This document shows, piece by piece, positions 4,688 through 52,900 of a stretch of 64,000 nucleotides of DNA. Under the pieces are notes generated by a model that worked only from the letters and a program-made list of their open reading frames with translations, searched no databases and was not told where the DNA came from. Origin of the DNA: Eutreptiella sp. 'Long Island Sound 2002' (lineage: Eukaryota; Protista; Euglenida); NCBI GenBank assembly GCA_964036045.1, contig OZ038378.1, positions 188,170,001 to 188,234,000 of the forward strand. The letters run 5' to 3'. Every line of letters begins with the position of its first letter. Position 1 is the stretch's first letter. The translations under genes were made by a program, and so were the position numbers.

Positions 4688-4760
4688 AATATTGCTGCAT
4701 ATGCATACCAGGACGTGCATGTCTGGAGCACTCTTTGATGTGCATGCGGCCCAAAAAAAA
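4688..4760 (+). repeat. Dispersed ~70-bp repeat, paralog of 8795-8860
   Basis: Shared attgctgcatatgcataccagga(c/t)gtgcatgt(c/g)tggagc(a/g)ct. Confidence 0.85.
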
Positions 4761-7384
4761 CGGGGCGAACACGGACAGCCTGTAGCATGGGGGCGTTCGG
4801 TTGCATCCATTGCTTTGTGCCCCCCCAAAAGTTCCACTGTGGCAGACACTCTTTCTGCAACAGCTGGTACCAGACATAATATTATGTCTGAACATCCGAT
4901 TTTCAGCGTGTCCGATCGCTCTGGTCTGGTTACAGTGCAGTGCCTCGTGTTGTGTGTGTGTGTGTGTGTGTATGTGTGTGTGTCATACATGCAGCTTTGC
5001 ACAGCTTCAGTCAACCCAAAAAGATCTGTTCAAAAGTCAGCTTTGAAAGGATCCATTCACTGGGTGAATCTGCATATGTTTGTGCACTCAACAACAGATC
5101 GGCCTAAATGGCCCGGCAGCTCAGCTCTTCACAATTATGAATATATTGAGATGGAAACGATGGCAACAGCCTCTTAATGCAGTCACCCTGCAGGGTGAAG
5201 GCTGGACTGTCCTACATGTGCATACGATTTGCAGACTTTGCCCGATCGCTTTCGAAAAAAGGTCGATCTATGAACGCTCTCAAAATGTCAGTCCAAAGCC
5301 CTGTAGCTCTGTGCCATGCAATAGCTCTATCCATCCAACAGGCAAACTTCCCTTCAGGACAGAAAATGCAGTGGCGCATGCTACAGGGTGCTGTGTTCAT
5401 GGCAATTTTGATTTTTTTTTGCATGTGACAGAATGAGATGACCATTTTGGAAACCACAGGCACCCCTTCCTAGATGTTTGACATCATCTGTCACTTCATC
5501 CTCCATTACTTTCTCCATGACTCTTCCTCCCACAAGAGGCATCTACTTTCTCCCCACATATCACCATATATGCCCTGCAGTGACCATCTCCTGCAGAGAT
5601 GACAGATGCTGTCTTGTGACCACCGTGTCAAGTCATATCCGAAGAGCTTGCAAGGCATTGGCAGGCCAGAATAGCAGGTCACTGGTGCTCCTGCTGGTGC
5701 TGTCTTGCCCCCGTGTAAGCCATCCAGGCACATTGGAGGTCATCATAGGTGGCCTGCCCTGAGGTAGCTGCTGGAGACCACTGGGAGTCAACGACTGGGA
5801 CAACTGGGAGGGTGAAAGGCCGGTCTGTGTTGCCCCCGTGTGATCACAGAGCAGGCAGTTGTGCTTCCACAGTTGGCTGTCCATTGAACGATATGCTTCT
5901 GAGAATCTTTTTGCAGCACAAAACCATGGTGTACAGCTTGTGATCTAACCAGCAGCAGCCACATGAACGCACGGGGCCTGGCCAGGCAACCACTGAGCAA
6001 ACATAACCTAGGTCAGCCATTGTTCTGTCGGCGCCGAAGGCACCCTGCCAGTGCCACGCGACCCTCAGGGAAGCAATGGCGGGACTCAGTGCCCTCAAGC
6101 CCAAGGCCAATGCTCCTAAATATGCTCTCTCTCTCTCCCTCTCGTTTTCTGAGAATCTTTTGCCATACATGCTGAATACCCGGCAGCATCCCCTATGGTA
6201 TCACTCGAAGAAGCCTGTATTGGGTGATACTGTATGATTCTGGTCATAACACCAACATGTGTCAGACATTATAGCCCGAAGGCTCTCTCACCTTCGTCTC
6301 TCCTGCAGGTCCTGTACACTGGAAGGAGAAAAAAGAATCTTTTGCCGTCCAAAAGATTTACAACCTGAGATGCTGCACAATTTTGGAATTACTGCCTGGC
6401 ACCTCCTCAGTATTTGTGCTGACGAAAAAACACAGATGAATCTAAATCCGCCAACTGTTCCGTCCTGCTTGGGGTATTTGGGTCAAGATCCAATGGGTGC
6501 CCTAGGGTAGGAGATTGAGTTGTTTTGCTCTGTCTTATGTGCTCATGTTTTCTTGCCATTGCCAGTTGGTGTTGTGCCTTGTTCCATTTTGCTGCTGGAT
6601 TGGGTAACCCACTACGACTGGCAGATTGTGGTGAGGATATGTTGAGGTTTTGAAAGGCCCATGGTGGGTGCCGCCAGCGCGGTGCACAGAGTGCACCAGG
6701 GCATGTGCGTTTGGCTGCATCCGTGAACCCTGATGCCCATGTGCGCCGCAAGTCACCACGTTGCTCCGTTTTGAAGTCTTGGGGCTATGCTCTGCAGCAT
6801 GGTGTAAAACCCAGGGTATTTCAATGATGCAGTGTGCGCGGTGCGCCGGCGGCACCCTCATGGACTTCTGTCTGTCCCAAGGCCCAGGGCAGGGATGTGC
6901 TGGGTGCTTGGCCCACCTTTGGAGGGATGGGTGGGTGGGCATTACGGAAATCCTGGGCGGGTAGGTCATTTGGGAGAATTTGAACCCAAAGTTTAGCAAT
7001 AAAGTTTGGTTTAAACCCAGCAGGGACAACAAGTGTGTGTTGTCTCAGGGGGAGACGCCGGCTTCTGCTGCATGGGGGGTGAGGGTGGGGCGATTGACCA
7101 CCATTGGAATGATCTTGTTCCCTCTCAACAGTTTGATGATTGTAGCCGCCAGTCGGCCATTTCAATGGCCCGCACCCACCACTGTTTCCTTGGCACTACT
7201 GTAAATGTGTGTGATTTCCCGCCATCATGTACATTAGCTACATGCCGTTAGTTTGGGTCATTTTGATGCATTGCTTTTTGGAGACTGTCATGTCAATTGT
7301 TCTCATCATTTGTCATTTTCTGCTATTGTGTGTCTCATCATGCATCAGCAGGCCTGTTCATATGATGTGTGCCAGTTGCAGTGC

Positions 7385-7772
7385 ATACTGAAAACCCCCG
7401 TTTTTGCACTAAAACCCCCCCCCTTTTGTACTAAAACCCCCCGGGCTCTAAAATGCACTAACCCCCCCCCGTCTTATACTACCCCCCCCCCCCCCCCGGG
7501 GATTTTTAGTATAACAGGAGGGGTTTTGGGCGGGGGTTTTTTAGTACATTTTGGGGGTTGTTTTAGTACATTTCGGGGGGCTTTTTTTAGTACATTTCGG
7601 GGGTTTTTTTTGTACATTTCCAGGGGTTTTATAGTACGTTTTGGGGGTTTTTTTTAGTACATTTCCGGGCGGGGTTTAGTGCATTTTGGGGGGTTTTTCA
7701 GTACGTTTTTGGGGGCTTTTTAGCACATTTCGGGGAGAGTTTTTGGTACATTTCGTGCGGCTGTTTAGTACA
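7385..7772. repeat. Foldback minisatellite (~22-bp units in inverted arms)
   Basis: The left arm repeats tactaaaacccc and the right arm repeats ggggttttttagtacatttc; the orientation switches near 7490-7510. Confidence 0.75.
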
Positions 7773-7984
7773 TGGGGTGTGTGTGTGTGTGAGTGGGCTT
7801 GTGACCAAGTGGACGCATGGCTGCCACAGAGTTCCAGAGTGGGGTCTCCCGTTTAGTGTGGGGAACCCAATTTTTCTATTGTCTGCTATCTACTGTCTAC
7901 CCGCCCCCCCCACTCTCGTTTCCCCTCCCCCGAGGAGGTCGGCATGTCGAGGTATAAACGATTCAGGCGCCATATTGGGTAAGA

Positions 7985-8060
7985 GGCATGGACGGTCTAG
8001 TGGTATGCGCCATGGCTGGCGCTCTTCGTGGTTGGGGGTTCGATTCCTGGTTCGTCTGTC
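7985..8060 (+). mobile_element. tRNA-derived SINE head or tRNA pseudogene
   Basis: A-box-like GGTCTAGTGG (7994-8003) and B-box GGTTCGATTCC (8037-8047) at tRNA spacing; it does not fold into a full cloverleaf. Confidence 0.55.
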
Positions 8061-8324
8061 CGTCCAGGGGCCCGCCGGTGAGGTCCCCGCCACCGCCCCC
8101 TTCAGCATCCCGCCCCACCATCGGTACCGCCGGTGGATCGGTGGCGTGTCTCGTCCTCATAGTTTTTTTTTGTCTCGCCATGGGGTATGTTTTACTTTTG
8201 AATGTATCAGGTATGTCCACACGGGAAAACAAAAGCAAGGCACTATCCACAGCACACCTGCATCAACGCGCTCCGTCACTGGTACCGCCGTTGCGCCGCC
8301 GGAACCGCATCTCCTCCTCATAGT

Positions 8325-8397
8325 CCTCTTCAGCGGGGACTCGAACCCCCGTCTTCAGGGCGGTAGCCGGCTGCATCGCCGCTGCGGTACAGGGCCC
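8325..8397 (-). mobile_element. tRNA-derived SINE head
   Basis: The minus strand reads GGGCCCTGTACCGCAGCGGCGATGCAGCCGG...CGGGGGTTCGAGTCCCCG: an A-box-like TACCGCAGCGG, B-box GGTTCGAGTCC and an intact T-stem, but no acceptor stem. Confidence 0.55.
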
Positions 8398-10028
8398 AAA
8401 AACCTTCTTCATGTCTCCTAGCTCTTAGGAATGCTTTGTTTGGACAGAAGGTATGCACCAAAGGCTGGGCCTGTGGCCCCCTCACATCCACATTGTCGTC
8501 ACAGTCTGTGTGGCTCAATGAATGAGCATGAGCCATACACACACACACACACACACTGCTGACCCCCGCTCCGTGAGTGTTGTAGGACGAAACGACACGT
8601 TGGCCGATTGAGAGCCACCATACTGCAAGCCTGTCCAGCCGCCTGTGGACCTCAACCCCTCGTACAGTGACCTGCAGGCTAGAGGTTTTGGCCGACAAAA
8701 CACGGCCAGAAGAGGGTAACTAGGCAAACATCAGTGCAACCTGTACATACGCTGAAGTGCTCGTGGAACCATCGTATCAATGGAACTGCCGGACATTGCT
8801 GCATATGCATACCAGGATGTGCATGTGTGGAGCGCTTTGTTGACCTGCTTGCGGCCCCCCACTCTCAAATCTTCCCCATTTTTTTCAATGAAACGTGTGT
8901 TTATAACAATGCCTCTTCCGCCAAAAAAACATTCTTTTTGTAGGTGCGCCTACTATTTTCTTCATCGCATTTATTTATTTGTTGGCTAAATGACTAGGAT
9001 GGCGGTAACATCTGGCACAAATCGGCCCTATATGGCCCCCAAAATGAAAATTGACACGTTTTGGAAACCTTTCCAAAAACAATTATAGTTGTGCATATGC
9101 AATTTCACTGTAAAAATTTATTTTTAAAGGGCACTATTTGAACAGAAAACCGCAAGTGTTACCCCCCAAAGGGTCATCCCTGGGGTGGTGCCCAAGCCAT
9201 GTGCGCGACACGAACTAGTTACGGATGTTGTTGTTGTAGGTATGTTCATATATTTATCCCGAAGCACATGTTTGGAGATGTAGAATTAAGACATGATACA
9301 TCATGAGCAAAAACTAGTAAGTCGGTACACTGCTGATGTGGTGTACGGTAGTGTGATATCACACAACAGATCGATGTCAGTTCGCGTATGTTATTGCCTG
9401 CTGCATTGCTTCTTCCGCTGGGGGTAATCTTTTTTTTAGATGTGAAATCTTTTTTTTAGATGCGCTAGAATTTAAGAAAAGTGCTAAAATTGAAGTCAAA
9501 ACAACTAAAAAATGAGCAAAAACAACTAAAAAAAATAAGCAAAAACATGTAAAAAAATTTCGCATGAAAAAAGATATTCTACTAAAAAACAAGATTCCAA
9601 CAAATCCTAAAATCTAAAAAAAAGTCATTCGCATGTTTAAAAACTTCAAAAAAGCAGAATCTTTTTTTTAGATGGCCAGGTAAAAAGTGAGATTTTGGCA
9701 AGCCAGGGGTGGGGAGGGGAGGCAGAAATGCAGTTCCTAGGGGCACCCCACATTCCTGAGCGAACCCTGAAAAACAAGGCACAAAGCAAAGAACGGTAAA
9801 CAATGCCAACAAGACCGGAGCAAATGGCTGAACATTTGCAGAATGTGCTGTTGCATTACACACTACATTACATGAAGATAATCTAACCCACTTGATGGCG
9901 TCGGGACATGCCACTGTGCAAATGATGCACAAGATGCCTACCTTGTGGAGAAAAGCTAAAATGCCGTGGATTTTTTTGGACATGTCAAACAAATACACAA
10001 CCAGCATCGCTCCCTGTGTGCACCTTGG

Positions 10029-35759: not shown

Positions 35760-36312
35760 CACCTCGAAGAGAGGTTGTTATACCCCCCTTTTTGGGGGGT
35801 CATTCGCGTAGCATACCCCAAGACATGATATTGGATGTCCAACCCCTTGTAAAATCATTATTTTGCCCAATAAGACAATCCCCCAATGGATTTTTTGATT
35901 CTGCAGCCTCTATCCCCTGAAACTGGATATCACTTTTTTTTTTGGGTGGGGCTGGGGCTGGGGCTGGGGCTGGGGGTGGGGGATCAAAAGTTTGTGCTCA
36001 GAAGTTTGTGCTCAGAGGGGTTTGAACGAGGGTCAGATTGGCCAAGATAGCCGGTCGGCCGGCCAGGATTCGAAGCGCCGACCCACACATCTGAATTCGG
36101 CTGCATTACCGTTCGACCGTTGCTTCTTCTAACACTGTCTGTCCTCCCCACTGCTTAATGCCAAGTCTGCCACTGAAAAAAACCAAACTGTGTGTTTCTA
36201 TTTGCTTGCCTGCTTGCCCGACTGACTGTCTGACTGACTGCTTGCCTGACTAACTGGCTGATTGGCTGACTGTCAGCCTCTCTTCGAGGTGCACTGCCGA
36301 AGGCAATAGAAT
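35760..36312 (+). mobile_element. Non-autonomous Helitron2/Helentron-like element, short variant (553 bp)
   Basis: The 5' end CACCTCGAAGAGAGG (35760-35774) is a perfect 15-bp inverted repeat of 36277-36291. This is followed by hairpin TGCC-GAA-GGCA (36295-36305) and ATAGAAT. A GACT/GCTT-type microsatellite precedes the 3' subTIR. The host repeat is restored on removal (gtaccaaat|ttcgcc; paralog at ~35350-35390), giving a T|T target. Confidence 0.8.
36055..36125 (-). mobile_element. tRNA-like SINE fragment inside the short Helitron2-like element
   Basis: Minus strand CGGTAATGCAGCCG matches CGGCGATGCAGCCG of the 8325-8397 head (12/14) and is followed by a B-box-like GCTTCGAATCC. Confidence 0.4.
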
Positions 36313-41069: not shown

Positions 41070-43480
41070 GTAAATACTGCCCAAAACATGCTTCACATAG
41101 CTGGAATGGTCATTGTGAGTGGTCAGGGTATCAGAAAAATAAGTTTCGAAAACTTCGATGCATAAGCAGGTTGTGTCCTTCTCCGGTGGGAGAAACCCCT
41201 CGCACCCAACACCCAAATAAGGTGATAAACACAGAAATGCCGCCCAAATAATGCTTCATAGTCTGAATGAAAGACTGCATGAGCAGGTTGTGTACCAATC
41301 TCTTGGGAGACGCCCTGTGCACCCCAAACCCGAATAGGGTAAAAAACACATAAATACCGCCTAAAACATGCTTCACGTAGCTGGAATGGACATTGTGAGT
41401 GGTCACGCGTGAAGAACACAGAAATACCGCCTAAACCACACATGACCGGATTGGTCATTGTGAGTGGTCACAATATCAAAAAACAAGTTTTGGAAACTTT
41501 GATTTTTGAGGTGCCCAGGGTGAAAAACTGCATAAGCAGGTTGTGTACCAATCCCTGTGGAGACCCCCCCCCCCTCCCACACCCAATACCCAAATAGGTT
41601 GAGAAACACATAAATATGGCGTAAAGCATTCTTTCCATAGCTTAGGTGGTCATTGTGAGTGGTCACGAAATCAAAAAACACGTCTCGGCAATTTTGATTT
41701 TTGAGCTGCCCCGCCTGAAAAGCTGCCTAAGGTTGTGTACCAATCCCTTTGGAGACATCCCCCGCACCCACAACCCAAATAGGGTGAAAAACACATAAAC
41801 ACCGCCTAAAACATGCTTCACACAGCTGGAATGGTCATTGTAAGCGCTCACGGTGTCAAAAAAATCAGTTTTGGAAACTTTGATCTTTGAGCTTCCCAGG
41901 GTGAAAGATTGCATCAGCAGTTTGTGTACCAATCCCTTCGGAGACACCCCCCCCCCCCCCGCACCCAATACCCAAATAGGGTAAAAAACACATAAACATG
42001 GCGTAAAACATGCTTCACATAGCTTGGATGGGCATTGTGAGTGGTCACGATATCAAAAAAACAAGTTTTGGAAACTTCGATTTTTGAGGTGCGTGGGGTG
42101 AAAAGCTGCATACGCACGTTGTGTACCAATCCCTTGGGAGACACCCGCTCCCCAGCACCCAATACCCAAATAGGGTAAAAAACACATAAACATGGCGTAA
42201 AGCATTCTTTCCATAGCTTTCCATAGCTTAGGTGGCCATTGTGAGTGGTCACGAAATCAAAAAACACGTCTCGGCAATTTTGATTTTTGAGCTGCCCCGC
42301 CTGAAAAGCTGCCTAAGGTTGTGTACCAATCCCTTTGGAGACATCCCCAGCACCCACAACCCAAATAGGGTGAAAAACACATAAACACCGCCTAAAACAT
42401 GCTTCACACAGCTGGAATGGTCATTGTAAGCGCTCACGGTGTCAAAAAAATCAGTTTTGGAAACTTTGATCTTTGAGCTTCCCAGGGTGAAAGATTGCAT
42501 CAGCAGTTTGTGTACCAATCCCTTCGGAGACACCCCCCCCCCCCCCCCGCACCCAATACCCAAATAGGGTAAAAAACACATAAACATGGCGTAAAACATG
42601 CTTCACATAGCTTGGATGGGCATTGTGAGTGGTCACGATATCAAAAAAACAAGTTTTGGAAACTTCGATTTTTGAGGTGCGTGGGGTGAAAAGCTGCATA
42701 CGCACGTTGTGTACCAATCCCTTGGGAGACACCCGCTCCCCAGCACCCAATACCCAAATAGGGTAAAAAACACATAAACATGGCGTAAAACATGCTTCAC
42801 ATAGCTTGGATGGGCATTGTGAGTGGTCACGATATCAAAAAAACAAGTTTTGGAAACTTCGATTTTTGAGGTGCGTGGGGTGAAAAGCTGCATACGCACG
42901 TTGTGTACCAATCCCTTGGGAGACACCCGCTCCCCAGCACCCAATACCCAAATAGGGTAAAAGACACATAAATGTGGCGTAAAGCATTCTTTCCATAGCT
43001 TGGGTGGTCATTGTGAGTGGTCACGAAATAAAAAAAAAGCAAGTTTCGGAAACTCCGATTTTTCAGGTGCCCAGGGTGAAAAATTGCATAAGGAGGGTGC
43101 CAATCCCTTGGGAGACCCCCCGCCCCCCCACACACATTACCCGTGAAGAACACATAAATACCGCCTAAAACATGCTTTGCATAGCTCGGATGGTCATTCT
43201 GAGTTGTTACGATATCAAAAAAATAAGTTTCGGAAACTTGGATTTTTGAGCAAGGCCAAGGGTGAAAAACTGCATAAGCAGGTTGTGTACGAATCGCTTG
43301 AAAGATGCCCCTCAACACACCCAATACCCAAGGAGGGTAAAAAGCGCATAAATACAGGCTAAAACAATGTTACATAGCTTGAATGGACACTGTGACGGGT
43401 CATGGTATCAAAAAAATAAGTTTTGGAAACTTCTATTTTTGAGCTGCCCAAGGCAAAAAAACTACATAAGCACACATGTA
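41070..43480. repeat. ~194-bp tandem satellite with a ~585-bp higher-order (ABC) repeat
   Basis: The motif cccaaatagg recurs at 41589, 41774, 41971, 42165, 42360, 42559, 42753 and 42947 (spacing 185-199). Monomer variants occur in the order A,B,C,A,B,C,C,A. Confidence 0.92.
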
Positions 43481-44081
43481 AGCCATTATTAGTCGTGATT
43501 AGTCGCGAAATCGTGATTTCGCGTCTTTCACACGGCCCTTGACCGACCATAGACAAGGCTAGAGACAGCAAAAAATGTCCTTTTGTATCCTAGGAGGCAT
43601 ATGCTCACAACATCCTCACTTGCACCCCTTGGAGTGGGTACCACGAGGTCACTAAGGTCGCCAAAAACGCCGACATGGCAAAGACGATTAAAAACTGCAT
43701 AAAATCGCACAAGCGCTCGTCCCACTCCGCTCCACACAAACCCTATGGAGGTGGGACCCGAAAAAATTTTTCGGCTCACAATAAAAAAACCAAAGATTCA
43801 TGATTTTTGACCCAAACAAAGGGGGGGTTGCCTTTTCGATATTTTTGAGCCCCCCCCCCCCAAAAAGGGTTTCAAGGTGGGGGGGGGGGGCTTGGCAGGT
43901 CCGGACCAAAAACTCATTGGGGGATGTGTTTATTGGACAAAATAATGATTTTAGCAGGGGTTAAACAAACAATTCAACCCCTTGAGGTAGGGTACACAAA
44001 TAGGCCTAGAAAGGGGGTTATGTGGTGTTTTCCCTCATGTGCAGGCTTGCCTGGCTTTGATCTAACAACCTCTGCAAGGTG
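41070..44081 (-). mobile_element. Helitron2-like element copy 1 with expanded internal repeat array; 3' end not found
   Basis: Ends in ...gatctaacaacctctgcaaggtg (44081). A ~600-bp terminal module (43480-44081) is homologous to copies 2-5 but more diverged. It is preceded by roughly 12-13 copies of the ~194-bp repeat. Confidence 0.7.
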
Positions 44082-44460
44082 ATTTTTGGCCTCTTTGGAC
44101 AAGGGCAGAAAAATCTTTGGCTTTCAGCAAGCCCACACCACAAAGAATTGCTCCTAACTGTGCACCGCAAAATGGCCCTAGAATTTTGCCTATCCATCTT
44201 TACGATGGGCTGACATAGCGCTAAAACAGCCCTTTCACATGCCCATGGACCCCGCTAGGTGGGCCTAATTGGCACTACACGGCTCCCCATGGGTTTTGTG
44301 TGCACCCATGATGACCCACATGATGACCCACGCTTGGCCCATGTCCACCCAGTAGTCATCAAAGCTCACCCGAAAATCGCAATTTTTCAGCCAACCCATG
44401 CTGGAGAAATTGTTTTCACCAAATGCGCTTCTACCCAAAATGTTCAGATTTGAATGTAAA

Positions 44461-47146
44461 ATTCTATTGCCTTCGGCAAAGTCCACCTCGCAGAGAATCT
44501 ACTCCAAGCAACACACACACAAAATAGGGAAAAACCGACATGAATACGGCCTAAAACATGCTTTACATAGCTTGGATGGTCATTTTAGGTGATCACGGTA
44601 TCAGAAAAATAAGTTTCGGAAATTCTATTGCCTTCGGCAAGTCCACCTCGCAGAGAATCTACCCCAAGCCACACACACGCTAAATAGGGTAAAAACTACA
44701 TATATACGGCCTAAAAAATGCTTTACATACCTTGGATGGTCATTTTAAGTGGTGACATTATCAAAAAAACAAGTTTCGAAAACTTCGATTTTTGAGCTGC
44801 CCAGGTTGAAAAGCTGCATAAGCAGGTTGTGTACCAACCCCTTGGGAGACCACCACCCCCCCCCCCCCCCCGGACCTAATACCCAAATAGGATGAAAAAC
44901 ACGCAAATACGGCCTAAAACATGCTTTACATACCTTGGATGGTCATTTTAGGTGATCACAATATCATAAAAACCAGTTTTGAAAACTTTGATTTTTGAGC
45001 TGCCCGGGGTGAAAAACTGCATAAGCAGGTTGTGTACCAATCCATTGGGAGACCCCCCCCCCCCGACCTAATACCCAAATAGGATGAAAAACACGTAAAT
45101 ACGGCCTAAAACATGCTTTACATACCTTGGATGGTCATTTTGGGTGGTCACAACATCTAAAAAACAAGTTTCAAAAACTTCGATTTTTGAGCTGCCTAGG
45201 GTGAAAAACTGCACAAGCAGGTTGTGTACCGGCCCATTCACTAGGCCATTATTGGTGGAAACAGCCATTTCGCGTCTTTGGCACGGGTTGTGAACGGCCC
45301 TAGGCAAGGCTAGAGACTGCAAAAAACGTCCTTTCGTATCCTAGTAGGCATATACGGTCACAATATCCCCACTCACACCCCTCGGAGGGGGTACCACGGG
45401 GTCACCGAGGTCGCCAAAACCCCCAACATAGCAAAAATGGGTGAAACGTGCATAAACTGCACAAGCGCTCGTCCCACTCCGCCCCATACAAACCCCATGG
45501 AGTCGGGACCCGGAAACACTTTTTCGGCTCCAAATCGAAAAAAACCAAAAGATTCATGATTTTCAACTCAAAAAAAGGGGGGGTCAATTTTTTGAACCCC
45601 CCTCCGGCCCCCCCCACCTCCCTCAAAACCTCAAAAAAGTGGGTTTCAAGTGGGGGGGGGGTCCGGGGGGGTCCGGACCAAAAACTCATTGGGGGATGCG
45701 TTTATTGGACAAGATGATGATTTTACAAGGGGTTAAACCAACAATTCAACCCCTTGGGGTAGGGTACGCGAATAGGCCCAAAAAGGCCAAAATGGGGGGG
45801 TATGTGGCGTTTTCCCCTACATACGCCTGCCTGGCTTTGATCTAACAACCTCTGCGAGGTGACTTCGATTTTTGAGCTGCCCAGGGTGAAAAACTGCACA
45901 AGCAGGTTATGTACCCATCCCTTGGGAGACACCCCCCCCCCCCCCCGGAGCCAATACCCAAATAGGGTGAAAAACATGTAAATACGGCCTAAAACATGCT
46001 TTCCATAGCTTGGATGGTCATTTTAAGTGATCACGGTATCAAAAAAACAAGTTTCAAAAACTTTTATTTTTGAGCTGCCCAGGGTGAAAAACTGCATAAG
46101 CAGGTTGTGTACCCATCCCTTGGGAGACACCCCCCCCCCTGTGCGCCCCATACCCAAGTAGAGTGAAAAACACGTAAAATACGGCCTAAAACGTGCTTTA
46201 CATACCTTGGATGGTCATTTTAGGTGATCATGGTATCAAAAAAATAAGTTGCGAAAACTTTGATTTTTGAGCTGCCCAGGGTGAAAAACAGCATAAGCAG
46301 GTTGTGTACCATTCCCGTGGGAGGACCCCCCCCTCCGCGGACCTAATACCCAAATTGGGTGAAAAACACGTAAATACGGCCTAAATCATGCTTTACATAC
46401 ATTGGATGGTCATTTTAGGTGATCACAATATCATAAAAACAAGTGTCGAAAACTTCGATTTTTGAGCCACCCAGGGTGAAAAATAGCATCAGCAGGTTGT
46501 GTACCGGCCCATTCAATAGGCCATTATTGGTGGAGACAGTCATTTCGCGTCTTTGGCACGAGTTGTGACCGGCTCTCAGCAAGGCCAGAGACTGCAAAAA
46601 AATGTCCTTCCGTATCCTAGCAGGCATATACGGTCACAACATCCCAACTCACACCCCTCAGAGTGGGTAGCACGGGGTCACCGAGGTCGCCAAAACTGCC
46701 AACATAGCAAAAATGGCTGAAAAGTGCATAAACTGCACAATCGCTCGTCCCACTCCGCCCCATACAAACCCCATGGAGTCGGGACCCGGAAACACTTTTT
46801 CGGCTCCAAATCGAAAAAAACCAAAACATTCATGATTTTCGACCCAAAAAAAAGGGGGGGGTCAATTTTATGAACCTCCCCCCCCACCCCCCCCCCCCAC
46901 CCCCCCCACCTCCCTGAAAACCTCAAAAAAGTGGGTTTCAGGTGGGGGGGGTCGGGGGGGGGGTCGGGACCAAAAACTCATTGGGGGATGCGTTTATTGG
47001 ACAAGATGATGATTTTACAAGGGGTTAAACCAACAATTCAACCCCTTGGGGTAGGGTATGCGAATAGGCCCAAAGAGGCCCAAAAGGGGGGGTATCTTCC
47101 CCTACATACGCCCGGCTGGCTTCGATCTAACAACCTCTGCGAGGTC
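44461..47146 (-). mobile_element. Helitron2-like element copy 2 (split by copy 3)
   Basis: On the plus strand it begins ATTCTATTGCCTTCGGCAAAGTCCACCTCGCAGAG (44461) and ends CAACCTCTGCGAGGTC (47146). It has about 4 internal ~192-bp repeats, and its first repeat is interrupted at 44621/45862. Confidence 0.85.
44622..45861 (-). mobile_element. Helitron2-like element copy 3 (1240 bp), nested in copy 2
   Basis: Both termini are complete and there are about 3 internal repeats. The flanks aagtttcggaa|acttcgatttttgag rejoin to the intact repeat consensus, so there is no TSD (at most 1 nt). Confidence 0.9.
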
Positions 47147-47419
47147 ATTCAAATAGAAGTCATGGGCCTGCAATCACCTACCCATTATATTTCTCCCTTG
47201 AACTGAGTTTTTTAGGGGAACGAATTTCTCGCAGAATGAATGGGTTTCCCTTTTATGGGGGGGGGGGGGGGGGCTAAAGGCTCAGTGAGTATGCCACTTT
47301 TGGGGATGGGGGTGGGGGTGGGTGGGGGGAAGGTCTAGACCCATCTGCCGTAATCGTTCCAAACACCAGCCGTTGCAGATTGGACAAAATAACGCTTTTG
47401 CAAGAGGTTGGAGCCCCTA

Positions 47420-48856
47420 ATTCTATTGCCTTTGGCAAATCCACGTCGCAGATAATCTACCCCGAGCAACACACACCCAAAATAGGGTAAAAACTACATA
47501 AATACGGGCTAAAACATGCTTTACATAGCTTGGATGGTCATTTTAGGTGATCACGGTATAAAAAAACAAGTTTCGGAAACTTTTATTTTTGAGCTGCCCA
47601 GGGTGAAAAACTGCATAAGCAGGTTGTGTACCAATCCATTGGGAGACCCCCCCCCCCCCCCGCCGCACCGAATACCCAAATAGAGTGAAAAACACATAAA
47701 TACGGCGTGAAACATGCTTTACATACCTTGGATGGTCATGGTGATCACAATATCAAAAAAACAAGTTTTGGAAACTTTGATTTTTGAGCTGCCCAGGGTG
47801 AAAAACTGCACAAGCAGGTTATGTACCCATCCCTTGGGAGACCCCCCCCCCCCCCGGACCTAATACCCAAATGAGGTGAAAAACACGTAAATACGGCCTA
47901 AAACATGCTTTACATACCTTGGATGGTCATTTTAGGTGATCATGGTAGCAAAAAAATAGTTTCGAAAACTTCGATTTTTGAGCTGCCTGAGGTGAAAAAC
48001 CGCATAAGCAGGTTGTGTACCATTCCCTTGGGAGACCCCCCCCCCCTCGGGACCTAATACCCAAATTGGGTGAAAATCATGTAAATACGGCCTAAAACAT
48101 GCTTTACATACATTGGATGGTCATATCGTGTGGCCACAAGGTCATAAAAACAAGTTTCAAAAACTTCGATTTTTGAGCTGCGTAGGGTGAAAAACTGCAT
48201 CAGCAAGTTGTGTACCGGCCCATTCACTAGGCCATTATTGGTGGAGATAGTCATTTCGCGTCTTTGGCACGGGTTGTGACCGGCTCTCAGCAAGGCTAGA
48301 GACTGCAAAAAGACGTCCTTCCGTATCCTAGTAGCTAGTAGGCATATACGGTCACAACATCCCAACTCACACCCCTCGGAGGGGGTACCACGGGGTCACC
48401 GAGGTCGCCAAAACGCCAACATAGCAAAAATGGCTTGAAAGTGCATAAACTGCACAAGCGCTCGTCCCACTCCGCCCCATACAAACTCCATGGAGTCGGG
48501 ACCCGGAAACACTTTTTCGGCTCAAAATCGAAAAAAAAACCAAAAGATTCATGATTTTCAACTCAAAAAAAGGGGGGGTATTTTTTTTCGACATTTTTGA
48601 CCCCTCCCCCCTCCCTCAAAACCTCAAAAAAGTGGGTTTCACGTGGGGGGGGGGTCTGGGGGGGTCGGGACCAAAAACTCATTGGGGGATGCGTTTATTG
48701 GACAAGATGATGATTTTACAAGGGGTTAAACCAACAATTCAACCCCTTGGGGTAGGGTACGCGAATAGGCCCAAAAAGGCCCAAAAGGGGGGGGGTATAT
48801 GGCATTTTCCCTTATATATGCCTGGCTGGCTTTGATCTAACAACCTCTGCGAGGTG
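47420..48856 (-). mobile_element. Helitron2-like element copy 4 (1437 bp)
   Basis: Runs attctattgcctttggca...caacctctgcgaggtg with about 4 internal repeats, directly abutting copy 5. Confidence 0.88.
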
Positions 48857-49929
48857 ATTCTATTGCCTTCGGCAAGTCCACGTCGCAGAGAATCTAGCCC
48901 AAGCAACACACACCAAAAATAGGGTAAAGACTACATAAATACGGGCTAAAACATGCCTTACATATCTTGGATGGTCATTTTTAGGTGACCACAACATCAA
49001 AAAAATAAGTTTCGGAAACTTCGATTTTTGAGCTGTCCAAGGTGAAAAACTGCAGAAGCAGGTTGTGTACCAATCCATTGGGAGACCCCCCCCCCCCCTC
49101 CCCCCCGTGGCCCAACACCCGAATAAGGTGAAAAACACATAAATACGGCCTAAATCATGCTTTAAATACCTTGGATGGTCATTTTAGGTGATCACGGCAT
49201 CAAAAAAACAAGTTTCAAAAACTTCGATTTTTGAGCTGCCCAGGGTGAAAAACTACAAAAGCAGGTTGTGCACCAGCCCATTCACTCCTGTAACCCATTA
49301 TTGGCGGAAACAGTCATTTCGCGTCTTTGGCACGGGTTTTGACCGGCCCTTAGCAGAGCTAGAGACTGCAAAAAACGTCCTTTCGTATCCTAGTAGGCAT
49401 ATACGGTCACAACATCCCAACTCACACCCCTCAGAGTGGGTAGCACGGGGTCACCGAGGTCGCCAAAACTGCCAACATAGCAAAAATGGCTGAAAAGTGC
49501 ATAAACTGCACAATCGCTCATCCCACTCCGCCCCATACAAACCCCATGGAGTCGGGACCCGGAAACACTTTTTCGGCTCCAAATCGAAAAAAACCAAAAG
49601 ATTCATGATTTTCAACTCAAAAAAAGGGGGGGTCAATTTTTTGAACCCCCCCCGCCCCCACCTCCCTCAACCCCCCCCCCCCCCACCTCCCTCAAAACCT
49701 CAAAAAAGTGGGTTTCAGGTGGGGGGGGTCTGCGGGTCCAGACCAAAAACTCATTGGGGGATGCGTTTATTGGACAAGATGATGATTTTACAAGGGGTTA
49801 AACCAACAATTCAACCCCTTGGGGTAGGGTACGCGAATAGGCCCAAAAAGGCCCAAAAGGGGGGGGGGTATATGGCATTTTCCCTTATATATGCCTGGCT
49901 GGCTTTGATCTAACAACCTTTGCGAGGTG
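48857..49929 (-). mobile_element. Helitron2-like element copy 5 (1073 bp)
   Basis: Head-to-tail junction gaggtg|attctattgccttcggca at 48856/48857; about 2 internal repeats; ends tgcgaggtg at 49929. Confidence 0.88.
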
Positions 49930-52900
49930 ATTTAGCCCCTTGGGCTATGGCATGTGGTGTTTCCCAGCTGTGTGGGTCCGCCTGGTTTTGACCCAGCAAC
50001 CTCTGTGAGGTGGTTTTGACCCCCCCCCCCCTTCCCTTCGGACGCTTCCCACACGCGGCTGGAGAGGTCCAGAACTCAACTGAATCACGCTGCGTCAGAA
50101 AGAGGGCACTCAATCACCAATCCCAATCCTAGACAATGTGTGTGTCAGACATGACTTGGTGATGTACCAGGGTGCAGTGTCCAGCAGCGGCGTCCGGGAG
50201 CATGGCCCCGACAATGCCAATGCCTCTGCTTTCCATACTCCAGGTCTATCAATGCGTGCCTCGTCGTGCAGTCGCATACCTGAGCTGTGGTTGTAGAGTC
50301 TGGCCGACGACAGCTATGCCCGTTCCTGCTCTCTGCAGATGCCAATTTTGGCCAGCAGCCATTCTTGGATATGCTGTTCCACGGGGCCGGATATTTGAAA
50401 TCTGGTGGTCCCCTTTCCTTGATGGTCAAAGGGAGAGTGGGGATAGGGGCACGGGGTAATAGGGGCACAGGGAGATAGGGGCACAGGGAGATGAAGGGGA
50501 TAGCCGCAATCGGGGGTTAGCTGGGCACAGGGAGGTGTGGGTACATGGGCACAGGGGGAGCCCCCACCCCTCGGCCAAGCGACATTTTGTCCAAAAGCTA
50601 CCCTACCCGTGGGGACTGCCTGGGTTTGGCATCGACATTCTCTCGGTCCTGCTTGCAGTGTCGCCATCAAAGGCCACCTCCTCGATGCAATCGTTCTAAA
50701 AATCCGGGGAGTATGGAGCGTCAATCGGTGTTCACTTTGCGGTTGTGCTTCGTTCCCACCCATTCCGAGCCCCAGTGCCACAGCGTCCAAGCACCATGGC
50801 CGGCAAGCACCTCCCACTCAAGAGACAATGACAGCGCTGCATCGTAACCTACGCACACCCCTCGAACCCCCTATGCTCCTCACGGCCCTGCTGTGTTTTC
50901 TTGGAATCTGGCGTACAGTTTGATAATGGCCCTCTTTCATTGGCTGCGGGATGATCTGTTTGTCATCCCCATCTCTTTTGACTTCCCTTGTGAAAGGCTG
51001 TCCGGGCCACAGGCGGCTCGAGCTTGTCCATCAGCGTCGCATCCCCCGCGTGTTGTGGGTGTGCTCTCCCCTGGCGGTTGAAGGGCCCTTCCTCCAGACT
51101 AATGGGGGCCAGTTGTGTTGTGAGGAAAGAGAGGAGGGGACACAAATCGTGCAGATTTGCATTTCTCTTCCCCTGGGCCCTCCTCTCAGCAATTTGAGAT
51201 GCGACGGAAAGCCCCCCCTCCCCCTCCCGAATTGAGGATTCTTGCAAGAGAGATGGGGGAAGGGATAGGTGGGGTCATATGGATTAAGCTGGGATGCCCC
51301 CCCCTGGGTCAGTCCTCTAGAGGTTCCGTTCACACTGTCTGTCTGCCCCCCCCCCCCCCGATAGTATGCACAATGCCCCCCCCCCCTTCGACCCCAACGG
51401 CTAACCCAACATGCACATGTAAACATTGTTATTGGACCCTTGTTCTTGAGGGAGCCTTTGGTCCCCTTCCTTGATATTGTCTCTTTGCGTCTACAACGCG
51501 CCAACAGTGCCTACGATAAGTAGACCGTGTCTACTTGCAGCAGATAGTGTCTGCAAACGACAGAAAATGTAATCATTCCCCCCCCCCATAACTCGGACTC
51601 GGAGTGTGCATCTGGATGCACCTGGTCAATGGCACGGGCAACAGCCCGTCTCCGGGACAGCCAACCCTGGAGTAGTCAAACAGGACAAGTCATCCAGGGG
51701 CTCCGTTGACAACCAAAACACGTTCGGGCCCACAGAGGGTCAGAATGAGCATTGGCGAGAGGCCAATAGGCGCCGCCAAAGGCAAACAAATAGATACCGA
51801 GGCCTTGTGCCAAACCCCCCCCCATAACCCCCCACCACCTCCAAGGTGTGGGGGAACGATTTCGAGCGATGTATGATGCCTGACATGTCGAGCCTGACGG
51901 GAAAATGTGCCCGGAATATGTACACTTCCTTTGATGCCCTTTTGAATGATCCCCTCTCCCAGCCAGGGGGCAGAGTGGGATTGGGCCCCAGGGATATTGG
52001 GGAACAACAGGGTGATCATCCGGGTATAGCGACATGGGGGCACAAGGAGAGATAGGAGGCCTGCTTTGCCTGTCTCCTTGTTTGGGGGATATGGTCGTAA
52101 AGCCGCACCCTCCGTCATGTCCCGCTCAGTGCCACGCTGGCCGGAACGAGGTGTCAGCATTTTGTTGACACCACCACAAGACATTTCATATTATGCTGAG
52201 GGTGTGTTCCTGCATGTATTTTGTCAGGGTGCCCAGGAATCCTGGTTCAGCCAACCCAAGGACCCCCCCCCCCCCCGGAGGGTCTCCCGGAGGCCCCTCT
52301 GCGGGATGCTAGTGCCATTTGGCCGATACTTTTGGGCCACCTCTTCCCCAACGTGGGGACCCTGAGACAGCAGGCGGGGAGGGCCGGGATTGTGTAGCCA
52401 CTTTGATTGATTCCTCTCCCTGCACTGTTGCTTTACAATGGGGGAATGTAAAACACACACATGCTAACCCCTGGCGGGAACACCCCACCTCCACCTTGGG
52501 TCACAAGGCCGAGGCATCCCCTGTCACTACTTGGTGGATGTCGTGGAGTGACGCCCCCACCCCCCCTGCCCCTTTTGCCTGGACTAACCTCCCCCCCCCC
52601 CCGGGGGGGGGGGGGCAAGATAGTGCGGACCAGCTGGGTCTAGACCTACTGAGCCAGGATTCCCGGGGTCAGGGTGGGCGGAGATCACAGTGAGCAACCA
52701 CCAATGAAGCAGCTGGGGAGAGTGCGGCAGATTTCGAAACCTACATGGTGTCACCCCTCTGTTTGTCCTGGTTCGCTGGCCGAAAGAGCGTACAGATTTT
52801 GAGATGCAGCAGAAGGTGGGTGCAGAGGATGTGCTGCGTCCCAGATACGTCGGTGTGGCGCCCAGCAGTGGAGTCCAGTGCACGCAGCCTGATGACATAG

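Follow-up and report, generated by a model that had tools for sequence, protein, structure and literature searches.

A nested cluster of Helitron2-type transposons in a euglenid genome, and its autonomous partner

How does a few kilobases of DNA come to consist of one repeat inserted, layer upon layer, into copies of itself, and what kind of element builds such layers? Here, we address this question at positions 44461–50012 of a 64,000-nucleotide stretch of the euglenid Eutreptiella sp. 'Long Island Sound 2002' (GenBank assembly GCA_964036045.1, contig OZ038378.1, positions 188,170,001 to 188,234,000 of the forward strand), which we term the window; the assembly has a size of 2.28 Gb. An earlier note, made from the letters of the window, had described the region as a self-targeting nest of Helitron2/Helentron-like rolling-circle elements belonging to an active or recent non-autonomous family. 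We put the probability at about 0.85 that the copies clustered in this region are non-autonomous rolling-circle transposons of the Helitron2 type (HLE2), with an autonomous partner of 16–18 kb. The point that decides for a Helitron2-like element is that autonomous elements with the same ends, in the same orientation, encode DUF6570, an HUH Rep and a PIF1 helicase. The class named in the earlier note is thus borne out by the ends, the T|T insertion sites, the abundant head-to-tail junctions and the autonomous DUF6570/Rep/PIF1 gene, except that the element is no Helentron in the strict sense, since an endonuclease domain was not found.

Copies, nests and termini in the window

The window was mapped by BLAST of one copy against the window, together with repeat tables and a reading of positions 44000–50600. 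All window coordinates are given on the plus strand, and the element strand is the minus strand. Positions 44461–50012 hold four complete copies of one non-coding repeat, each 1.07–1.45 kb in length; the nest region contains no open reading frame (ORF) of 140 aa or more, and an Rfam scan of the window gave no match. The four copies, their older relatives and a sibling element are as follows.

44461–44621 and 45862–47146, minus strand: outer copy (copy 2), non-autonomous, split by the inner copy; hairpin stem 44467–44471/44475–44479, 3′ subterminal inverted repeat 44484–44495, 5′ terminal inverted repeat 47135–47146 (one mismatch, GAGGTC)
44622–45861, minus strand: inner copy (copy 3), 1,240 bp; 3′ subterminal inverted repeat 44644–44655, 5′ terminal inverted repeat 45850–45861
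47420–48856, minus strand: copy 4, 1,437 bp; about four internal 195-bp repeats, 5′ terminal inverted repeat 48845–48856
48857–49929, minus strand: copy 5, 1,073 bp; about two internal repeats, 3′ subterminal inverted repeat 48879–48890, 5′ terminal inverted repeat 49918–49929 (one mismatch)
47147–47419 and 49930–50012, minus strand: older diverged relative that hosts the dimer of copies 4 and 5; variant of the 5′ terminal inverted repeat, CTCTGTGAGGTG, at 50001–50012
42950–44081, minus strand: further older copy of the family; variant 5′ terminal inverted repeat at 44070–44081, internal repeats continuing upstream
35760–36312, plus strand: element of a sibling family, 553 bp; same hairpin and AAT end, flanks AAAT and TT

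The complete copies are arranged in two nests. In the first nest, the first of the outer copy's internal 195-bp repeats is interrupted by the inner copy, at ...CGAAGT^TTCCGAAAC on the element strand (the caret marks the insertion point). When the flanks of the inner copy are joined, the resulting 29 nt, AAGTTTCGGAA|ACTTCGATTTTTGAGCTG, match, without a difference, a 195-bp unit of copy 5 that is uninterrupted (approximately 48990–49020); the host repeat is restored exactly, as the earlier note had claimed with a boundary that was off by one base. In the second nest, copies 4 and 5 form a head-to-tail dimer inserted in the older relative at CTAAAT^TAGGGG (element strand). In intact copies, the stretch to which the flanks of this dimer (...GGAGCCCCTA|ATTTAGCCCC...) align is the canonical ...CCAACA|ATTCAACCCC..., and the junction within the dimer, GAGGTG|ATTCTATTG, is seamless at 48856/48857, where the 5′ end of copy 4 meets the 3′ end of copy 5; the dimer and its host are therefore as first described. 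All four insertion junctions of the window nests are T|T on the element strand.

The copies share their termini, which were seen on reading the sequence and recur far above chance. On the plus strand a copy starts with ATT-CTATTGCCTTCGGCAAGTC-CACCTCGCAGAG and ends with CAACCTCTGCGAGGTG; hence the 5′ end on the element strand is CACCTCGCAGAGG. The 3′ end on the element strand comprises CTCTGCGAGGTG, a 4-nt spacer, a TTGCC/GGCAA stem with a 3-nt loop (GAA), and then TAGAAT. The element therefore carries a 12-nt repeat at its extreme 5′ end and the complement of this repeat 22 nt from its 3′ end, followed by a 5-bp hairpin, TTGCC-GAA-GGCAA, that begins 3–4 nt past the subterminal repeat. The 12-nt inverted pair, CACCTCGCAGAG / CTCTGCGAGGTG, is found genome-wide and in all four window copies with 0–2 mismatches, including a C>G mismatch in the 3′ subterminal repeat of copy 5 that is identical to that of copy 4 (CACGTCGC in both). 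Within the window, the 12-mer CTCTGCGAGGTG has 11 matches against 0.16 expected, and the hairpin motif six against 0.12. Across the genome, the 34-nt 3′ terminus has 6,487 matches at up to three mismatches, and its reversed control has none.

The sibling element shows that the two arms can change together: its 5′ arm is CACCTCGAAGAG and its 3′ arm CTCTTCGAGGTG, and these are still complementary. Such compensatory change in both arms argues that their complementarity is selected. Variants of the sibling terminus are also present in four sampled loci (L002, L009, L018 and L029).

The sequence between the termini has features of its own. Every 195-bp unit contains a run of 10–20 C (window 44840–44872, 45560–45680, 46860–46970 and equivalent positions), and the 5′ part of the element contains facing C-rich and G-rich runs, such as 46883–46911 and 46940–46968, which are 90% complementary and whose lengths differ among copies. 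Just beyond the nest, at 50442–50492, lies a 16-nt tandem repeat (GATAGGGGCACAGGGA, 3.2 copies).

The autonomous element and other Rep genes

DUF6570 is a marker of HLE2 transposases (HELIANO, PMC11417382), and the genome contains at least 262 DUF6570 candidates and at least 863 Helitron_like_N candidates. A partner for the window family was located by intersecting the coordinates of DUF6570 matches with the list of exact termini, since one DUF6570 candidate, at C1:140276336, is flanked by two exact family termini. The earlier note had proposed a search for autonomous copies with an HUH Rep and a PIF1 helicase; these are present on C1 and C7 with the same ends as the window copies. Together with a shorter element discussed below, they are as follows.

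C1:140267415–140285321, 17.9 kb: autonomous copy; starts AAT^CACCTCGCAGAGG
C7:76777416–76793826, 16,411 bp: autonomous copy; one 3,451-codon frame without a stop
Pfam domains of the C7 frame, in residues: UCH 7–332; DUF6570 739–891; Helitron_like_N 1118–1399, with an HIH motif at 1394; PIF1, with Walker A GGPGTGKS at 2153; DnaJ, C-terminal
C1:2975230–2979549: 4.3-kb element; 5′ 1.2 kb of the family, approximately 3 kb of non-family interior, perfect terminus

The first ~2 kb of the C1 autonomous copy are family-like and include 195-bp repeats, and are followed by ~16 kb of unique sequence; at the 3′ end stand the subterminal repeat, a slightly mutated hairpin and AAT, and then TT. This copy is itself nested in a family copy, at CCAAT^TTGGG, and its joined flanks reproduce uninterrupted units of the window copies. 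It has a frame of 2,668 aa with DUF6570, Helitron_like_N and PIF1 and, directly upstream, a frame of 579 aa with UCH/USP. The C7 copy is 95–97.5% identical to it and collinear over the junction between family-like and unique sequence. DUF6570 scores above the Pfam cut-off in both copies (51 and 48.8 bits). From these matches, the autonomous element is predicted to carry a single giant gene in the order USP deubiquitinase domain, DUF6570, HUH Rep, PIF1 helicase and DnaJ. The gene is oriented in both copies with its start on the side of the 5′ repeat and its end on the side of the hairpin; this is the canonical HLE2 layout and not the 'reverse' one (PMC11417382). No endonuclease/exonuclease/phosphatase domain was detected in the 3,451-aa frame (Pfam, E ≤ 0.001), and no DDE or recombinase domain by Pfam in the two autonomous copies.

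The 3′ boundary of the autonomous form was defined by a search with the last 321 nt of the C1 copy, in which 40 matches were scored of 906 first-look candidates. Homology stops at query position 321–323, that is, at the terminus, in nearly all of the 40, and at 321–330 or beyond in the whole set. All 16 autonomous-type ends that were fetched read CTCTGCGAGGTG, GAC(A/T) (GGCA in one), TGCCGAAGGCA and ATAGAAT, then T, beyond which the flanks are unrelated. The autonomous elements, 16–18 kb in length, thus have their 5′ 1.2–2 kb and their 3′ terminus in common with the non-autonomous copies, in the same orientation; in sequence terms, a non-autonomous copy corresponds to the first ~1.2 kb of the autonomous element, including the 195-bp array, joined to its last ~40 nt. 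The 4.3-kb element is likely a deletion intermediate between the 16-kb and 1.2-kb forms, for the stretch beside its terminus matches the autonomous 3′ region by eye. The common ends and this 4.3-kb form together indicate that the 1.1–1.4-kb family is an internal-deletion derivative of the autonomous element.

In the autonomous element, two additional tandem arrays, with units of ~293 bp and ~25 bp, separate the gene from the family-like 5′ part (positions 4700–7000 of the fetched C1 sequence, L049, and approximately 6400–8900 of the joined C7 sequence). These arrays yield spurious long minus-strand ORFs with meaningless Pfam matches.

Other candidates for the partner were set aside. The best Helitron_like_N matches, on C13 and C2, belong to a group with a 1,924-aa Rep and PIF1 protein that is canonical Helitron1 and has no sequence in common with the window family. 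A second group, with a 2,535-aa Rep, has no family ends within 20 kb. A search for family ends around a foreign interior by IUPAC exclusion patterns returned mostly indel variants; the 4.3-kb element, considered as an autonomous copy, was a deletion derivative instead; and a 12-nt match to the subterminal repeat 5 kb downstream of the C13 Helitron1 gene was dropped, having no matching 5′ arm. The loci of the two other Rep groups are as follows.

C13:5133100–5153099: canonical Helitron1; 1,924-aa Rep/PIF1 frame
C2:47284200–47286000: canonical Helitron1; 1,924-aa Rep/PIF1 frame, with a GC-rich hairpin and then CTAG at the 3′ end (approximately 330–365 of locus L047); the C2 copies form head-to-tail units of ~14.7 kb with ~100% identity
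C6:28323000–28342999: 2,535-aa frame with partial Helitron_like_N, PIF1, SAP and DnaJ; other long ORFs lie around it on the same strand, and its own ends did not turn up within 20 kb

Target site, self-insertion and the rival explanations

The insertion site was read from the flanks of listed exact termini. Of 100 listed 5′ junctions, 97 have AAT as their 5′ flank (element strand), and the first flanking base is T in ~66 of 71 non-dimer 3′ junctions (hand count). De-duplicated flanks give the logo A(10/13) A(13/13) A(11/13) T(13/13) ^ T(33/35) T(32/35). The T|T site that the earlier note assigned to all insertions holds in the window junctions and in the de-duplicated flanks, and the target is narrower, AAAT^TT. 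With T on either side, moving the border by one base gives AAA^TTT as an equally valid notation for the same site. Joining the flanks of a sampled copy (L001) gives a 30-mer with 341 genomic matches, of which 100 or more are exact, and at this copy the filled site consists of the empty site with the element added; for the window nest and for the nested autonomous copy, uninterrupted paralogous units match exactly. Head-to-tail junctions of the seamless kind have 1,322 genomic matches at up to two mismatches, 29 of 100 listed exact 3′ ends run straight into a 5′ end (hand count), and these junctions hold one AAT per unit.

Several observations weigh against a Helitron2-type, rolling-circle element. 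AAT both precedes the 5′ end and closes the element, and three readings yield identical sequence: the element ends in AAT without duplication, the element begins with AAT, or a core CACC...ATAG duplicates a fixed AAT. The absence of a target-site duplication is consequently not provable from sequence. The earlier note had claimed that there is none; the restored empty sites and the ACT flank at 45862 (plus strand) agree with this, but a fixed 3-bp ATT duplication gives the same sequences, and the data come close to the one that the earlier note had set against its own reading, as ATT follows GAGGTG in 97 of 100 copies and ATT starts the element (plus strand). The inner copy of the window, with AGT on its 5′ side and AAT on its 3′ side, favours no duplication; it is the only intact case with a flank other than AAT, and one mutation could explain its AGT. 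Two other 5′ flanks other than ATT were fetched, and both belong to truncated copies that lack the hairpin end and are uninformative on duplication. The hairpin is thermodynamically weak, with a fold energy of approximately −3.4 kcal/mol and a z-score of approximately −0.5, no better than shuffled sequences; it is significant instead because thousands of copies have conserved it, as have the sibling family and the autonomous elements. Placement of the protein in HLE2 would follow from the DUF6570 marker together with the element layout. The genomic head-to-tail junctions are consistent with the proposed rolling-circle process, and there is no sign of circles or of ongoing movement.

The ambiguity over AAT leaves room for two elements of another kind. 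A cut-and-paste or otherwise non-rolling-circle element with true ends CACCTC...ATAG and a strict 3-bp AAT target duplication, for which the Rep/helicase would be cargo or a coincidental neighbour, would account for the fact that nearly every copy has AAT before and after CACCTC...ATAG, the filled site then being the empty site plus this core and one extra AAT. We consider this very unlikely: just one arm of the inverted repeat is terminal, its partner lying 22 nt in (19 without AAT) with a conserved hairpin in between; the Rep/helicase is the only long gene in the two autonomous copies, which have no DDE or recombinase domain (Pfam); at 20–30% of ends, copies are joined head to tail seamlessly and with one AAT between them; and the unequal flanks of the inner copy do not fit a strict duplication. 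Site-specific recombination of a circle by a tyrosine or serine recombinase, as in Cryptons, with crossover in a shared AAT core, would also produce tandem copies, and the single AAT per dimer unit and the AAT on both sides of single copies fit such a crossover. Of all the explanations considered it is the least credible, given that the gene present in the autonomous copies encodes an HUH Rep and helicase and no recombinase domain, and that an asymmetric repeat with a 3′ hairpin is a hallmark of HLE2 (PMC11417382, PMC4067079).

If the family is of the Helitron2 type, a further question is whether its nests reflect a preference for its own DNA. Approximately 20–25% of non-dimer insertions lie in family DNA (~16 of 71 non-dimer 3′ flanks, hand count), and nine of these ~16 use one site of the 195-bp unit, ...AA(G/A)T^TTTCGAAAC. 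The family makes up an estimated 0.4–0.5% of the genome (~6,500–8,000 copies of ~1.3 kb), so that self-insertion is in ~50-fold excess over genome share. Composition is not the cause of this excess, as potential targets are scarce in family DNA: AAATTT is absent from 5.2 kb of window family DNA against 0.65 per kb outside, and AATT has a density of 2.1 per kb against 3.6. Of 129 uninterrupted hot-spot units, six carry AAT rather than AGT. Another repeat family is struck repeatedly at AAT^TTTCGAAAATTCG, and the motif TTTCGAAA, common to that target and to the hot spot of the 195-bp unit, points to a possible extended target motif around it. The repeated site in the other family reads AAT^TTTCGAAAATTCGA(C)TTTT(C)CCGAAACCC (sampled loci L010, L016/L017, L021 and several more).

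These counts admit two interpretations. One is that the element homes on itself, its Rep preferring sites in the 195-bp repeat and the 3′ borders of resident copies; we offer this tentatively, as a possibility that is open to doubt. The other, which we regard as rather improbable, is that nests and dimers arose with little or no insertion preference and that a few chance insertions were amplified later, whether through tandem or segmental duplications, unequal crossing-over within arrays or composite units that transposed, making self-targeting an artefact. Amplification has evidently played some part, for one nest junction with its flank variant recurs locally (~12 copies at C1:109.29–109.34 Mb, several at C1:1.77 Mb and C1:17.8 Mb), some 3′ flanks are found repeatedly in identical form (TGCTGTTTGTAGG, for one, five times) and termini lie ~150–170 bp apart at several loci. 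Because the same nest junction is multiplied in local arrays, the counts overstate independent insertions. As a whole explanation, amplification has to contend with the flanks that remain after those differing at up to four of 40 nt are collapsed, ~8 of 36 of which are still in family DNA (three judged by eye); with the use of at least four different sites inside the element; with the poverty of family DNA in AATT and AAATTT relative to its surroundings; and with the autonomous-type copies, of which six out of 16 end in the 195-bp-unit hot spot, beside flank variants that differ. Five of these six are on separate chromosomes, and the sixth is on a small contig that is unplaced. The preferential self-insertion proposed in the earlier note is therefore retained as a ~50-fold excess, part of which is due to composite units having been amplified locally. 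Sequence-directed homing and local hopping inside arrays would look the same.

If homing is true, insertions would be confined to a safe haven that the element makes for itself, layered satellite-like arrays would be built by transposition and not by recombination, and rolling-circle transposition would lead directly to heterochromatin-type DNA. At C1:109291689–109340515, at least 12 copies of one nest junction (5′ end beside ATTTCGATTTTTGAGCTGG) lie in both orientations within 50 kb, in what looks like a higher-order array from a nested pair.

Age, mechanism and comparison with known systems

Ages were estimated from identity to the consensus of a 26-copy sample over the 5′ 600 nt. By this measure the four window copies are 93.5–95.4% identical to the consensus, with the inner copy at 95.4%, its outer host at 93.7% and copy 4 at 93.5%; other sampled copies reach 97%, and the older copy ending at 44081 stands at 84%, with 76% identity overall to the inner copy. 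The inner copy is therefore younger than its host, and the order of insertion layers is consistent with the consensus identities. Copies 4 and 5 are 93.6% identical, the highest pairwise value among the window copies; as closest relatives with a shared mismatch in the subterminal repeat, they probably arose together or from one source. Copies that are ~5–6% off the consensus do not make a recent nest, and the suggestion of an active or recent family thus fails for the window. For the lineage it is allowed, without being proved, by the open 3,451-codon frame and by the 3′ regions of ~19 autonomous copies, whose mutual identity of 96–99% is compatible with recent activity.

The mechanism that we propose is modelled on the established behaviour of HUH transposons; in Helraiser, for instance, a 3′ hairpin serves as the end signal and circles with joined ends are formed (PMC4778049). 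Rep would nick one strand after AAT at the 5′ border and again after the AAT past the 3′ hairpin, and the released or copied strand would be joined into a target in which the nick follows the same AAT. Resident copies have a 3′ border (GAAT^TT) that resembles the target, and several AAT^T sites also lie inside the element's repeats; new copies would hence come to adjoin old ones, giving head-to-tail dimers, or enter them, giving nests, and layered arrays would accumulate over time. Seamless dimers could result from the target-like 3′ border or from concatemers produced by rolling-circle copying.

The findings tie an abundant repeat (~6,500 copies) of a 2.3-Gb protist genome to a named mechanism and an enzyme gene. 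An HLE2 family curated with its exact ends, target and autonomous copy is an aid to repeat annotation in its lineage: no description of Helitrons in Euglena was found in the literature searched, and a diplonemid genome paper makes mention of Helitron-like ORFs only. The family also provides a clean case of an HUH transposon whose target (AAAT^TT) mimics its own predicted 3′ cleavage site, and a natural system in which to study how rolling-circle elements seed tandem and nested arrays. It leaves the known working of Helitron-like elements unchanged. What is new is the link to an autonomous element and the measured self-insertion bias.

Among known systems, HLE1 elements such as Helraiser (PMC4778049) resemble the window family in their HUH Rep and PIF1 helicase and their 3′ hairpin, used as end signal; they make no target duplication, as may also hold for the window family, and both head-to-tail copies and circles with joined ends are known in HLE1. 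They differ in ending with 5′ TC and 3′ CTRR after the hairpin, in inserting at A^T and in having no inverted repeats, whereas the window family ends with 5′ CACCTC and 3′ ...ATAGAAT; the genome's own HLE1 elements, with their 1,924-aa Rep/helicase and their hairpin plus CTAG, are unrelated to it in sequence. HINE/DINE-1 elements (PMC4067079) are closer. Like the window copies, they encode no protein, have subterminal inverted repeats of 12–15 bp, a short 3′ palindrome and central tandem repeats, insert in T-rich targets with no demonstrable target modification and an ambiguous number of flanking T's, and are enriched in repeat-rich heterochromatic regions. Unlike them, the window family has its 5′ repeat from the first base (2–4 nt in for HINE/DINE-1) and a 3′ tail of 22 nt (38–60 nt), and the Helentron partners of HINE/DINE-1 carry an APE-type endonuclease of which none was found here.

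The closest likeness is to HLE2/Helitron2 (PMC11417382), in which terminal inverted repeats of 12–16 nt, a stem-loop after the right repeat and T/T insertion are combined with a transposase that contains DUF6570, Rep and PIF1 helicase; inverted repeats of 11–18 nt at the two ends, by which HLE2 is recognized, are present in the window family. Heli2Xen of Xenopus (PMC12001565) likewise has minisatellites common to autonomous and non-autonomous copies, with a unit of 166 bp compared with 195 bp here, and Xenopus Helitron2 has the same tendency to tandem arrays. The euglenid family is distinguished from HLE2 and Heli2Xen by its host, its strong self-nesting, a target that extends to AAAT^TT with AAT at both the 5′ flank and the 3′ end, and a single 3,451-aa frame that has USP at its N-terminal end and DnaJ at its C-terminal end. 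It is a well-documented addition to a known class of transposons and not a new kind of element.

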